64,000 nt of DNA from Macrostomum lignano (lineage: Eukaryota), in assembly GCA_002269645.1 (NCBI GenBank), contig NIVC01004014.1, positions 1 to 64,000 of the forward strand, given 5' to 3'. A program made the translations under genes and the position numbers. Shown piece after piece: positions 59,705-63,522 of the stretch. The notes under the pieces are model-generated. The model saw nothing but the letters and a program-made list of their open reading frames with translations. It did not search any database and had not been told where the DNA came from. Numbering within the stretch: the first letter of the stretch is position 1; the number at the start of each line of letters is the position of its first letter.

Positions 59705-62700
59705 TCACCTATTGACGGCGCCCTTCTGCAGCCGCAGGTCCCGCTGGTGCTGCTGCCACAGTCGTTTGAGCTGCCGGCTGCGAGTCCGCCTGGCTCGAGT
59801 TCGTCGGAGCTCCCGAATGTTGCCAGCCGCCAGGCTGTAGCCTTTGTGCAGCGTCAGCAGGACTCCGCACAGCGCGGCCCCGAAGCTCCATACCGACTGC
59901 GTGCGCATGATGTAGGACTCCGCCACGATGCCGCTTTTCCATTCGAAGAACAAAAAGAACTGCTTCCGGCTGCTGGCATCGGACTGATGGCGGTCCCAGT
60001 GCCACACCAGGCTGTACTGATGGCCCGCGACGGACGGGGAAAGGTATAAATAGAGGTCATCAGGGAAACTTCTCTGCACATGTTATTGGAGATCGCCTAC
60101 TAAATAGTAGCAAGTAAAGAATGTGAAACGAATCTCAAGTGGAGTTTGGAAGAGTGTTGCGTACTAATACACTTGTAGTTGAATAGACAGAAATTCTAAT
60201 TGGAGTCGGCCACAGCCAAAGGGCGCCAATACTTGGTGTCTAGGTCGGCGCCCTGTTTCTTGGTTGGCACCCCTACCCACATCTCCTAGGCCGGTGGATG
60301 CCACGTTTAAGAGGTGGCAAAAGCGTAAACGCCACTGCTCTCACATGTCTAAAGAGTAGAGACTGCGAGTACGACATTGAGAAGCTTCTAATAGGAACCA
60401 GTTTAAGACAGATTTGTTTATTAAGTCTGGTACGCTCGTACCTAGTGCGTCCAAAAAGTTCTTAGACACCCCTCCTATCTCTGCATCTGTTTAATCGATA
60501 TATATAAAATGTTACACAAACATGGACCGATATGTAATGAATTCAGTGCTAAAGTTTCAGCTTAATCGGGTTGACAGAGCAAAAGCAATCGATCATTTAC
60601 TGAAGAACCTACGAAATTAGCAATACGATTTTAAACTCAACAAAATGTAAAAGTTAACGAGCAAACAGTTCAAACTGACAAGTTCCAGAACTTCAAAAAC
60701 AGATCACCAATCGTGAAAATCTTCAGAAGAATCTTCATTCCGTCGAATGCACTTGTCATATCGCATCAGCAACTCATCCTCAATCCACGCCGACCACATC
60801 GGCGTAGGTGTCGCTCTGATCAGCCCCTCAGCAGCCGCTTTCAGCTCGGGGGAAGCTGGAAAACCGCTGGCCTCTTGGACTCATCCTGCGTGCTGAATCT
60901 GCTCTTGAACTCGTCTCCCAGAGCTGAAACTGCCGCCCTTTGTTGCAAGCAGACTTCGTATCGGCGATTCTTTTGCTCTTAAACCACCTGAGGCTGGTTC
61001 CGCGTCTCAGCATCTGAATCTGGCTATGCTGCTTACTGCTCTGTTCTTTTTTGCTCTTTAATCTATGGCTAAACCCTCACAGCTTGCATTAGTATTAAAT
61101 CAATTAAGGTATTAATCAATACTCAGAGAAAGCAGTGATATTTTGCTGATTAATTTTTCTGAAAAATGAGCTGCAATGTCACCACTGGAGTCCAGGTTCG
61201 ATGCTCTTCAAAAATCGTATTGCTAATTTTATACGTTCCTCAGTAAATGATCGATTGCTTTCGCTCTGTCAACCCGATTAAGCTGAAATGTTAGCACTGA
61301 ATTCATTACATATAGGTCCATGTTTGTGTATTTTTTTATAAAAATCGCTTGAACAGATGCAGAGATAGGAAGGGTGTCCAAGAACTTTTTGGACGGTTAA
61401 CTCTGCCAACCTGCAGGAATCCTACCGGCAAGGGGCAGGCGTGCACTCGGCGTTTTTTTGACAAGCAGACCAAAAATAGCTAGCGTCGGCTGGCTGAAGT
61501 CAGTGTCGGCGCCTCCAGGCCTAGAGGTGAGGCTGCTCTCTTTAGGAACTAACTGACAGCGTATTCTGTTGTTTGTTCGTTGTTGTTTTCAGTCAATTGT
61601 CCCGGTCTGTGACTTGCTAATTTTTTTTCTACAATAGCTCAGTAAATAGGCAGTTTCGTGGGCTCACCTCCAAGTCCAGCACCACCTGAGTGGGCTCGTG
61701 GCCGCCTCCAGCTCCATGTGGGTCATGCTGAGCCGGTTCCACATGCGCAGCCCGGCAGACGCCGCGTACATGGGCTGGTGGCTGCGGATGTCGGCTACGA
61801 ACTCCAGCCGGTCGGCCTGTGACCTGCAGACGCAGTTCAGGTGTCACAAAATTTGGGCCTATCTGTAGTTTGCGTTTGCGAGTCTCTCGCTTTGTGAATG
61901 TATGTTCGTGTCTTTCGGTAGCGGTACCGAGATTGGAACTTTCTGACTGGAGGTCGGTCAAATGCCTCATATTTTGGGAGTTGACCCACAGCGATCGCTG
62001 AATCTGCCTATTCCGCTGACTCCTGAGCACATACCGGTACAAGCACGCACTCATACGCAACGCTTACACAGGGTGTACAGCGGTCCTGACTTTCTAGTCG
62101 TCAGACATGTACACTCTGTGATTTGGGAATCGGCCCTCTTGGGTGGGAATCGCACGAAAACTCGCTGGCCAATTTTCGTTCACAAGCCCCAAATGCACCC
62201 TTATCTCGGGGTTCGGTTTAGTCATCCGATGGGTGCACACCGATTGCTGAAGGCCCAGTAGTCATGGAACAGCAGAAACCCCAGCGAGTAGAAATCCTGA
62301 TCATCGCTTGTGTCAGCCGTAAAGTAGAGGAACAGCGTCTCCTTCTCCTTGACTCTGGAGGGGCCCATGAACACAAGTGCGTCGTGTCCAGCAAACTCGT
62401 CAGTCTGGTTGTCCGCAGCGTCTCTGTAGGTCAGGCTGCGGTAGTCGCAGTCTGTCCGGTTCAGATTCCACTGCGTCGCGTGGTCTAAAAATCGGCCGGT
62501 TTTTTCAATTTCGAGCTTCTCTCGAGTTACAGACTGGGCAAACTTTCGGTCTGTAGTACCGAAAGTGCACCGGGGACTCACGCACTCCAGAATTCAGCGC
62601 TGAGGAGCCGGTAGTAGCTGCAGGACTGCAGTCTAGGCCCGTTGGGAAACACCGCGATGCCTGAAGTGTTGACAGCGGAATGCAGCGCATGCTAGGAAAA

Positions 62701-63522
62701 GAAAATTCCAATGAAATATGATGAAGGAGAAAGTTCCGTCTCGTGGGAAATGGCTGAATAATTAGCATCCAGGGCAAGTTGCATAGCAACTGACTGCCGA
62801 CAGTGGATCGTGGATATTCTGCTTTCTTATTTGGCTTGTGTTTTATGCTCCTGTTGGAGCAGCACGTTCACATGAGTCAGGAGTAGAATCACCAGGTAAT
62901 ACATGATTACATCGATACTGATGCTACTACTACTACTACTACTACTACTACTACTACTACTACTACTACTACTACTACTACTACTACTACTACTACTACT
63001 ACTACTACTACTACTACTACTACTACTACTACTACTACTACTACTACTACTACTACTACTACTACTACTACTACTACTACTACTACTACTACTACTACTA
63101 CTACTACTACTACTACTACTACTACTACTACTACTACTACTACTACTACTACTACTACACTACTACTACTACTACTACTACTACTACTACTACTACTACT
63201 ACTACTACTACTACTACTACTACTACTATACTACTACTACTACTGCTACTACTACTAATACAGGTAAACTGTGTAATGTTTGTCGTTATTCTCACCTGGA
63301 GCGTCATAGCGATCCACTGGCCGATGTTTCACGACCGCACGGATACCTAGTCGCCTGGAGCAGGTCCTGGATGAGCTGAACAGTGAAAAGACAGGCTGCC
63401 ACTCCAACTATTGCCATGGCAACTGTAGAACTCACGCGCCAGTAGTATTCGCGCTTGGAGATGTACTTTTCCTGAACTGCCGTCTGACTTGCCGATGTAC
63501 AGGGGCTGCTGAAACGCCAGAT
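59705..63522 (-). CDS. PACC1: Proton-activated chloride channel PAC/TMEM206 homolog (exons 63522-63436 uncertain, 63375-63296, 62660-62582, 62484-62241, 61823-61668, 60073-59705); 5' end unresolved
   Basis: Colinear matches to remembered human PAC: VDRYDAP|GIAVFP, LQSC, DCDYRSLTYRDAADNQT, ALVFMGPSRVKEKETLFLYF, DFYSLGFLLF, FFLFFEWK, VWSFGAALCGVLLTLHK and a basic C-tail. Small indel corrections are needed near 63335-63342, the 62582/62484 junction and 61700. TM1 was not located. Confidence 0.85.
60448..61395 (-). mobile_element. Degenerate Tc1/mariner-like element with about 185-bp TIRs and a transposase C-terminal remnant, in the last intron of the PAC-like gene
   Basis: 60448-60632 and 61211-61395 are reverse complements. 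An internal minus-strand peptide ELKAAAEGLIRATPTPMWSAWIEDELLMRYDKCIRRNEDSSE resembles the mariner C-terminal pattern (RW.KCI..NG.Y.E). Confidence 0.72.
61985..62215 (-). mobile_element. Diverged relative of SINE family B in a PAC-like intron
   Basis: The minus strand gtgtacatgtctgacgactagaaagtcaggaccgctgtacaccctgtgt parallels the family B body. The tRNA head is not evident. Confidence 0.55.
62925..63257. repeat. (TAC)n trinucleotide microsatellite in a PAC-like intron
   Basis: Direct reading; source of the poly-L/Y/T ORF 62903..63379. Confidence 0.97.

Follow-up and report, generated by a model that had tools for sequence, protein, structure and literature searches.

In the human proton-activated chloride channel, PAC, three histidines (H98, H130 and H131) act as pH sensors, and E107, D109 and E250 make up an acidic pocket (PMC9351481, PMC8733619). 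As to which animals possess such a channel, Ullrich et al. 2019 stated that animals simpler than hemichordates lack TMEM206 homologs and that no species has paralogs of it, and the hemichordate protein stayed in the endoplasmic reticulum (PMC6663466). Nothing specific on PAC in flatworms or protostomes was found in the literature. No invertebrate PAC is known to conduct. There are, all the same, database entries for several members of the Pfam family PF15122 (TMEM206), named in RefSeq or UniProt: proteins of the nemerteans Lineus longissimus (isoform X2) and Tubulanus polymorphus, of the annelid Ridgeia piscesae (A0AAD9KLG4) and of the hemichordate Ptychodera flava (XP_070558144). From the flatworm Macrostomum lignano, or its lineage, comes A0A1I8GFN0, a 249-aa fragment of the same family that UniProt calls "Proton-activated chloride channel".

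The window analysed here is a stretch of 64,000 nucleotides from M. lignano (contig NIVC01004014.1). Exons on its minus strand, from 59705 to ~63884, yield a protein of 367 amino acids when two frame breaks are repaired, and sequence comparison confirms that the locus is genuinely homologous to the proton-activated chloride channel of vertebrates, within the TMEM206/PAC family. A flatworm PAC/TMEM206 homolog split over short exons is what the initial annotation had claimed, and a significant match to TMEM206 was the check it proposed. Against PF15122 the refined protein scores 133.4 bits (cut-off 27 bits; E-value 1.2e-38), in an unbroken alignment to positions 22-290 of the 296 in the profile. 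Among solved structures, the PAC chains 9hqn, 8h8d and 7jna are matched at E ~3e-32 (2.8e-32), residues 67-345 of the query lying against 77-342 of the chain, and this single stretch spans the first transmembrane helix (TM1), the ectodomain and the second helix (TM2). Hydropathy peaks over TM1 at residues ~59-81, some 225 residues (approximately) separate TM1 from TM2, and the latter can be matched position by position to its counterpart in the solved chains. PAC proteins of flatworm and nemerteans match the same exons in tblastn searches. By homology to those chains, the protein would be a two-pass one with a large beta-rich ectodomain, expected to assemble as a trimer.

The features of the locus are as follows (in donors a slash marks the exon edge).

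63784 to 63884, minus strand: putative exon 1, with ATG at 63884, encoding MTSESADKTKGVGTAAKGVSTAMLQITGRLAGE(G); donor GG/gtgaga, phase 2
63296 to 63508, minus strand: exon 2, cytosolic juxtamembrane segment and TM1, then ..RYP / AVVKHRPVDRYDAP(G), the slash here being frame break 1; donor cca g/gtgaga, phase 1
~63367 to 63435, minus strand: TM1, within exon 2, VSSTVAMAIVGVAACLFTVQLIQ, the hydropathy maximum
62924 to 63261: (CTA/TAG)n microsatellite of ~113 copies, occupying most of intron 2
62586 to 62660, minus strand: exon 3, (G)IAVFPNGPRLQSCSYYRLLSAEFW, with the cysteine equivalent to C128 and Tyr-Tyr at the positions of H130 and H131; donor A/gtgcgt, phase 1
62241 to 62484, minus strand: exon 4, (N)HATQWNLNRTDCDY..NQT..GPSRVKEKETLFLYF..DFYSLGFLLFHDYWAFSN(R), with the equivalents of C149, N162 and E181
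61668 to 61823, minus strand: exon 5, SQADRLEFVADIRSHQPMYAASAGLRMWNRLSMTHMELEAA / HEPTQVVLDLE, the slash being frame break 2; donor GAG/gtgagc, phase 0
60448 to 61395: foldback or MITE-like element in intron 5
59705 to 60016, minus strand: exon 6, YSLVWHWDRHQ..KQFFLFFEWKSGIVAESYIMRTQS, TM2 and basic C-tail, its start favoured by homology
~59825 to 59893, minus strand: TM2, within exon 6, VWSFGAALCGVLLTLHKGYSLAA
59843 to 59845, minus strand: codon of the lysine equivalent to K319, in exon 6
59705 to 59707, minus strand: stop codon TGA

All five introns are bounded by GT and AG, and their phases are consistent. Intron 5 contains two inverted arms of 185 nt (60448-60632 and 61211-61395), 91% complementary and 578 nt apart. 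The initial annotation had recognized five exons ending at 63375. Those exons are real, but there are six, and the gene goes on beyond that point: 63508-63340 encodes TM1 and the N-terminal part, in a frame other than that of the DRYDAPG stretch, and upstream of them is the probable ATG exon (63884-63784). The motifs that it had read from the minus strand are all there: VDRYDAPG/IAVFP (across an intron), LQSC, RTDC, NQT, GPSRVKEKETLFLYF, FEWK and VWSFGAALCGVLLTLHK with its basic tail. So too are the motifs it attributed to the human protein (DRYDAPGIALYP, C128, C149, NQT, FEWK, W304, C311-G312 and K319), which are found in the gorilla/human-cluster sequence P0136 and have aligned counterparts in the flatworm protein.

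Some exon boundaries required a choice. Exon 1, the donor of exon 3 and the acceptor of exon 6 were placed by phase and homology only, and exon 1 itself was predicted ab initio only, its N-terminus not being conserved across the family and hence having no homology support. It is the sole upstream ORF with an ATG and a GT donor that joins the TM1 frame in frame, through the acceptor at 63510-63509. An alternative N-terminal reading in frame 0 (..DLAFQQPLYIGKSDGSSGK) would require one more frameshift, in a run of four A, and was not adopted, because exon 1 reaches the TM1 frame without it. The weaker donor of exon 3, at 62586, was chosen because no other joins exon 4 in frame. With it, 23 residues separate the two conserved cysteines, as in the nemerteans. 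The strong donor GC/gtgagt at 62582 does not share the phase of the one good acceptor, 62485, and would alter this spacing. Exon 4 matches the M. lignano protein P0001 at E 6e-16 with 43% identity, and exon 6 does so at E 1e-32 with 74% identity (both tblastn).

Exon 6 has another in-frame acceptor, at 60075/60074; with it the exon would begin at 60073 and be 19 residues longer (RSFPDDLYLYLSPSVAGHQ). A first model built on that start was dropped, since homology favours 60016. Its match to PF15122 (E 2.3e-32) amounted to 112.8 bits in two stretches, and moving the start to 60016 raised the score to the 133.4 bits in one stretch given above and lowered the E-value in the PDB search from 5e-27 to 2.8e-32. 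With the later start, the junction aligns without gaps to all homologs, making 60016 the more likely boundary.

Indels had been claimed for this gene, and they are present in the form of two breaks, at ~63339 and ~61700, that interrupt the ORF over the spliced exons. Read literally as assembled, the gene encodes 101 amino acids and then stops.

63336 to 63342, minus strand: frame break 1, between the TM1 frame (..ACT AGG TAT CCG) and the DRYDAPG frame (GCG GTC GTG AAA..), with a lone T at 63339 between them
61698 to 61703, minus strand: frame break 2, one base missing in GCGGCCAC, where GCGGCCCAC or GCGGGCCAC is expected

Around the first break, the segments matching the Lineus PAC-like protein in tblastn fall in two frames, 63459-63340 and 63332-63294. 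Homologs have a near-invariant Pro-Val here, with 16 residues from the D(L/F) motif to (D/E)RYDAPG, and the flatworm sequence would fit a valine codon (xTx) minus two bases, for example CCG GTG GCG read as CCGTGCG. A short intron or alternative splicing was rejected as the cause, in that the frames switch within a few bases and homology is continuous on both sides; a splice from the donor AG/gtatcc at 63347 directly to exon 3 does not keep the frame. At the second break, the latter half of exon 5 must be read in another frame, since only then does it agree with homologs (GPARTILDME in P0001) and keep the phase of exon 6. One added base brings exon 5 to 157 nt (1 + 52 codons) and gives it the phase 0 end that exon 6 needs.

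A control for the quality of the assembly is available from another gene, separate from PAC, in the same window.

26000 to 27590, plus strand: intronless gene for a Shaker-type Kv channel, with two 1-nt deletions

Each of its deletions, after 26996 and after 27369, is the loss of a G from GG and breaks the frame. Compared with an RNA-derived contig (L001, from SRR31628392), the Kv gene shows 136 synonymous and 14 non-synonymous codon differences. It also matches the M. lignano protein model A0A1I8JRQ3, even across untranslated flanks that were translated, an agreement that points to M. lignano, or a near-identical genome, as the source of the DNA. The frame break in that model sits 6 nt from the break in the window. 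The offset suggests that the two are independent errors.

Is the PAC locus what it appears to be, and is it intact? PAC and ASIC/ENaC channels have a fold in common (PMC7904269, PMC9351481), which could allow a two-pass channel of the ASIC/ENaC/DEG kind, or even a chance similarity, to pass for PAC. This reading has a negligible probability and is refuted by E-values of 1e-32 to 1e-38: TMEM206 is the sole Pfam match, no match to Pfam ASC was returned by the model, and the PDB chains at E <= 0.001 are PAC without exception. Whether the gene is whole is a harder matter. M. lignano became polyploid recently; its karyotype is unstable, paralogs are in excess, and many gene copies are redundant and could be in decay (PMC10468722). 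The breaks might therefore be real lesions in a recently inactivated duplicate left by the whole-genome duplication, encoding an N-terminal fragment of at most 101 amino acids. Consistent with such a pseudogene, that fragment has no Pfam match, two separate sites are broken within ~1.1 kb of coding sequence, and the databases searched gave neither a protein model nor a transcript of this copy. Yet the homologous frames contain no in-frame stop codons, the splice sites are all intact and every one of the family-invariant residues is kept. Moreover, the lesions are small deletions in runs of G/C, a pattern of consensus error that differs from neutral decay, and those in the Kv gene are of the same kind. 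I therefore consider it quite unlikely that the gene is a pseudogene and probable that the breaks are indels of the assembly, because the Kv gene has suffered deletions despite strong purifying selection. Both would most likely have arisen when the assembly dropped single bases from G/C-rich coding sequence, and the animal itself probably carries an intact gene for ~367 amino acids.

If the channel is made, what opens it? The equivalents of K319, G312, C311, W304, L315, C128, C149, N162, E181, E250, E261, D269 and D109 are all kept in the alignment. The columns of W304 at the start of TM2, of C311-G312 and of K319 are invariant among the seven sequences of alignment A4, and in a wider set the last of these is lysine in all but the Ridgeia sequence, which has arginine. 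The DRYDAPG motif of beta1 is present, as are both ectodomain cysteines, which in the human protein form a disulfide (C128-C149); the equivalent of C149 is found in 20 of 20 aligned sequences. TM2 would line an anion-selective pore by way of the conserved lysine (K319) and the glycine at the helix crossing (G312). The initial annotation held that all human functional residues are matched, which is right for pore and scaffold and wrong for the pH sensor. Tyrosine takes the place of H98, H130 and H131, proline that of E107, and E94, E257, D289 and D297 are likewise replaced. One might then have an intact channel of the PAC fold that protons do not gate, or that responds at a very different pH or to another stimulus, activation through histidines being a refinement of deuterostomes or vertebrates. 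The nemertean homologs, which retain H130 and vary at H98 and H131, lend this something, but carboxylates can sense protons without histidine (see Deng et al. on interface residues, PMC7904269), D269, E181, E250, E261 and D109 are retained, and the tyrosine at H98 adjoins frame break 1, where the codon is slightly less certain. Non-proton gating is thus a tentative reading, well short of an even chance. Acid activation is possible because those five carboxylates are kept, and with all three histidine sensors replaced by tyrosine no confident prediction of it can be made; I would put its prospects at just under even. A broader proposal, that M. lignano has at least two old PAC paralogs, of which the all-tyrosine one is a non-proton-gated or pH-shifted anion channel of the PAC fold, and that histidine sensing arose later on the deuterostome side, is doubtful when taken as a whole.

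How much of this is new? A word-index search of a collection of 5.8 billion proteins found no protein model of the locus, as fits the guess that the gene had been missed or mis-annotated. The same search, an exhaustive search of representatives and BLAST of 278 retrieved proteins brought up no transcript or protein of the exact locus, the best match being P0001 at 44%. The expectation that the gene would fill a gap in the family tree did not hold, as A0A1I8GFN0 and the homologs of two nemerteans and one hemichordate (RefSeq) and of one annelid (UniProt) had already been named. Novelty is accordingly modest: the locus itself is unannotated, its paralog and its spiralian and hemichordate homologs are not, and the gain is incremental because databases already hold such information through automatic annotation. 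The practical return is a repaired gene model of an unannotated paralog from a flatworm capable of transgenesis, in which tyrosine naturally replaces histidine at each of the three proposed proton-sensing positions; this variant could serve to test the model of pH sensing. There is also a caution, that single-base deletions in coding sequence of the M. lignano assembly will break gene models.

The existence of at least two old PAC paralogs in Macrostomum runs contrary to the 2019 view of a single gene confined to vertebrates and a hemichordate. Taken with A0A1I8GFN0 and the nemertean and annelid homologs, the locus places the family in the common ancestor of protostomes and deuterostomes and shows a duplication in at least one lineage. 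A0A1I8GFN0 is the closest protein, with 74% identity over the last exon and a nearly identical TM2 (VWSVGASLCGVLLTLHKGYSLAAGN), but overall identity is only ~44%, so that it is a distinct, old paralog from another locus; it lacks TM1, and its odd insert, rich in Arg, may be an artefact of the gene model. Next come the PAC-like proteins of Lineus and Tubulanus (~32%). A rough neighbor-joining tree puts the window protein as sister to the M. lignano paralog, in a spiralian clade apart from deuterostomes. Identity is 31-33% to the spiralian homologs, which have in common a TM2 of the form LCGV(L/F)LT(L/I)H(K/R)G(Y/F) and the 23-residue spacing between cysteines, and ~23% to Ptychodera. H130 is retained in the nemerteans and in Ptychodera, unlike in Macrostomum; Ridgeia lacks that part of the alignment.

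Vertebrate PAC (PACC1, TMEM206, ASOR; structures 7JNA, 7JNC, 7SQF-H, 8H8D and 9HQN) can be aligned from TM1 to the basic tail after TM2 at ~26% identity. It shares with the flatworm protein DRYDAPGIA, the ectodomain cysteine pair, the NQT sequon at N162, E181, E250, E261, D269 and FEWK, and within TM2 W304, C311-G312, L315 and K319. Relative to human PAC, besides the changes of H98, H130 and H131 to tyrosine and E107 to proline, E94 and E257 have become glutamine, D289 serine, D297 isoleucine and I307 glycine; the two proteins have unrelated N-termini, and the flatworm C-tail exceeds the human one in length and in basic character. With the ASIC, ENaC and degenerin channels, described in the PAC structure papers as trimeric and two-pass with a beta-rich ectodomain fold (PMC7904269, PMC9351481), no sequence similarity is detectable here, and their ion selectivity is the opposite of that of PAC.

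Every motif listed in the initial annotation was recovered by three-frame translation of the minus strand of 59600-64000, in separate open stretches between GT-AG introns. With the two closest database proteins as queries, tblastn found homologous segments in five locations:

63459-63340 and 63332-63294, minus strand: tblastn segment, in two different frames
62661-62611, minus strand: tblastn segment
62482-62246, minus strand: tblastn segment
61810-about 61700, minus strand: tblastn segment
60019-59741, minus strand: tblastn segment

The resulting gene model has six exons rather than the five first described, and the span 59705-63375, offered as the full gene, leaves TM1 and the N-terminus outside:

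63884-63784, minus strand: exon 1, ab initio, with ATG start and phase-2 donor GG/gtgaga
63508-63296, minus strand: exon 2, juxtamembrane segment, TM1 (about 63435-63367), then ..RYP / AVVKHRPVDRYDAP(G)
62660-62586, minus strand: exon 3, (G)IAVFPNGPRLQSCSYYRLLSAEFW
62484-62241, minus strand: exon 4, containing RTDC, NQT and GPSRVKEKETLFLYF
61823-61668, minus strand: exon 5, SQADR..MTHMELEAA / HEPTQVVLDLE
60016-59705, minus strand: exon 6, FEWK, TM2 and basic tail, ending at TGA 59707-59705

Exon 6 has two possible in-frame acceptors. With a start at 60073 the exon gains 19 residues (RSFPDDLYLYLSPSVAGHQ), which at this junction are absent from all aligned nemertean, hemichordate and vertebrate homologs; this start is the less favoured. 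The start at 60016 is preferred because it has the better upstream pyrimidine tract, because its junction (..VVLDLE/YSLVWHWDRHQ..) aligns without gaps to nemertean and vertebrate proteins, and because it scores higher against both Pfam and PDB. The first spliced draft, with the longer exon, matched Pfam PF15122 (TMEM206; curated cut-off 27 bits) at 112.8 bits (E 2.3e-32) and no other family; in PDB it matched solved PAC chains (8H8D, 9HQN, 7JNA and others, E about 5e-27 to 3e-26) and no non-PAC protein at E <= 0.001. With exon 6 from 60016 the Pfam match rises to 133.4 bits (E 1.2e-38) as a single stretch over profile positions 22-290 of 296, and the PDB match, also a single stretch, reaches E 2.8e-32 (query 67-345 against chain 77-342). 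Judged by these scores, the similarity to PAC is real and not chance, and the identity first proposed holds.

As assembled, the locus is not intact. Its literal spliced ORF stops after 101 aa, a fragment with no match in Pfam, owing to frame breaks at about 63339 and about 61700. At the first, a lone T separates the TM1 frame (..ACT AGG TAT CCG) from the DRYDAPG frame (GCG GTC GTG..). Homologs have a near-invariant Pro-Val here and exactly 16 residues between their D(L/F) motif and (D/E)RYDAPG, and the loss of two bases from the Val codon, e.g. CCG GTG GCG to CCGTGCG, would fit both the dipeptide and the spacing. At the second, a one-base shift is needed between the ..MTHMELEAA frame and HEPTQVVLDLE, the latter being the only frame that joins exon 6 in phase and one that aligns with GPARTILDME of the M. 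lignano paralog A0A1I8GFN0; I infer that one C or G was lost from GCGGCCAC. Protein database searches and BLAST of the retrieved proteins gave no protein model for this exact locus, which is consistent with the breaks having defeated gene prediction.

Are these breaks errors of assembly, or is the locus a real, recent pseudogene? The same window offers a control, an intronless Shaker-type Kv gene (26000-27590, plus strand; domains BTB_2, Ion_trans and Ion_trans_2). Compared over 381 codons with L001, an RNA-derived Logan contig of a close homolog (SRR31628392, 85% nucleotide identity), it shows 136 synonymous and only 14 non-synonymous codon changes, purifying selection too strong for an old pseudogene. 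The alignment nevertheless has exactly two gaps where the window lacks a single nucleotide, one following 26996 and the other 27369; each removes a G from GG and breaks the frame. The PAC breaks resemble them, being likewise small deletions in G/C runs. That a gene so constrained carries such lesions speaks against a PAC pseudogene, as does the state of the PAC exons, which apart from the breaks have no stop codons in the homologous frames and retain all splice sites and every family-invariant residue. The broken frame itself is what a pseudogene would explain, but on this evidence that reading is unlikely; the gene is probably intact and its breaks assembly indels, a judgement drawn from the Kv comparison and the state of the PAC exons.

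The best database match of the Kv gene, M. lignano A0A1I8JRQ3, represents the same locus in UniProt, and its similarity to the window continues beyond the coding region into translated flanks on both the 5' and the 3' side; this marks the source as M. lignano or a near-identical genome (Platyhelminthes, Macrostomorpha). The model contains many frame-shifted stretches, and has its own frame break 6 nt from the window's; the two look as though consensus errors had arisen independently in the two assemblies. Within the Kv coding region lies a match to the potassium-channel RNA-editing signal K_chan_RES (RF00485; 27432-27545, plus strand; 54.7 bits, gathering score 51), which suggests that the hairpin for A-to-I editing in Kv1-type channels is conserved in a flatworm.

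The window as a whole is extraordinarily dense in micro- and minisatellites, with 39 TRF rows scoring >= 200, including alternative periods of the same array (e.g. 13942-15293, 20975-24229, 28456-28907, 30204-32014, 42493-43564, 57061-58333 and 62924-63261). The arrays include (TATC) x 452, a 12-mer x 268, a 15-mer x 72 and (CTA) x 113, the last of which takes up most of PAC intron 2. They yield long spurious ORFs on both strands. PAC intron 5 holds an inverted repeat (60448-60632 and 61211-61395; 185-nt arms, 91% complementary, 578 nt apart) that resembles a transposable element of the foldback or MITE-like kind. Other ORFs are:

4506-5630, plus strand: proline-rich ORF, weak mitochondrial fission regulator match (E 1.1e-6)
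8812-9267, plus strand: WSC-domain ORF (E 1.5e-13)
9176-9583, plus strand: PAN/Apple-domain ORF (E 2.3e-8)
15929-16525, minus strand: 198-aa ORF, retroelement Gag-like by eye, no Pfam match
53578-54306, plus strand: tubulin-tyrosine-ligase-family ORF (TTL, E 3.9e-14)

The WSC and PAN/Apple ORFs share about 90 nt, read in different frames; they may belong to a single gene for a secreted protein, interrupted by a short intron, or mark a further frame break.

The repaired protein was aligned with P0136 (the gorilla/human-cluster PAC, giving human numbering), other vertebrates, a hemichordate, nemerteans and an annelid. It keeps the equivalents of W304, C311-G312, L315 and the selectivity lysine K319 (codon 59843-59845, minus strand), both ectodomain cysteines (C128, C149), the N162 sequon and the acidic residues D109, E181, E250, E261 and D269. 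Anion selectivity in human PAC is set by K319 (the K319E channel is cation-selective), and the glycine marks the TM2 crossing (PMC8733619, PMC7904269, PMC9351481). Given these conserved pore residues, K319 and the glycine included, I propose as the best-supported mechanism that the protein would form a trimeric two-pass anion channel with a pore lined by TM2.

The claim that every functional residue of human PAC has a counterpart here stands for the pore and fails for the sensor. Proton sensing in human PAC has been assigned to H98, H130 and H131 together with D269, and to an acidic pocket of E107/D109/E250 (PMC9351481, PMC8733619). All three histidine positions are Tyr here, and Pro replaces E107, Gln both E94 and E257, Ser D289 and Ile D297. 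The Tyr at H98 is slightly less certain, since it lies one codon upstream of the first break; all the other assignments, H130 and H131 included, are anchored by neighbours without gaps. Proton gating through the retained carboxylates is plausible, though not confidently predicted. The most interesting point about the locus is how a PAC with Tyr at all three histidine sensor positions would respond to acid.

TMEM206 is a small family: when 1.84 billion representative proteins were searched exhaustively with HMMER, 124 clusters passed E <= 0.001 and 20 passed E <= 1e-30. Named invertebrate members include A0A1I8GFN0 (UniProt "Proton-activated chloride channel"), those of the nemerteans Lineus longissimus and Tubulanus polymorphus (RefSeq "proton-activated chloride channel-like"), a RefSeq PAC-like protein of the hemichordate Ptychodera flava and a UniProt entry of the annelid Ridgeia piscesae. 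Outside the window, divergent unnamed proteins from ENA, JGI and Logan (P0178-P0184, P0195, P0208, P0239), some from contigs 0.9 to 8.6 Mb long, lie outside the vertebrate and spiralian groups in a neighbour-joining tree, most of them (P0178, P0180-P0184, P0208) together; they may represent further invertebrate lineages with PAC homologs.

Since databases already record TMEM206 in M. lignano, the locus closes no gap in the family tree in any strong sense; what it adds is a new member, so far unannotated, to a family already known. The initial annotation was right on identity and lineage, overstated novelty, and was incomplete on sensor residues and ORF integrity. I found no paper discussing a flatworm or protostome PAC, and a 2019 study stated that animals simpler than a hemichordate lack TMEM206 homologs and that the gene is without paralogs (PMC6663466). 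The spiralian homologs and the Macrostomum pair contradict this. In the rough neighbour-joining tree the protein is sister to A0A1I8GFN0, inside a spiralian clade apart from deuterostomes, as the flatworm/spiralian assignment had it; the two are 44% identical overall and 74% over the last exon, which fits vertical descent with an old duplication in the Macrostomum lineage.
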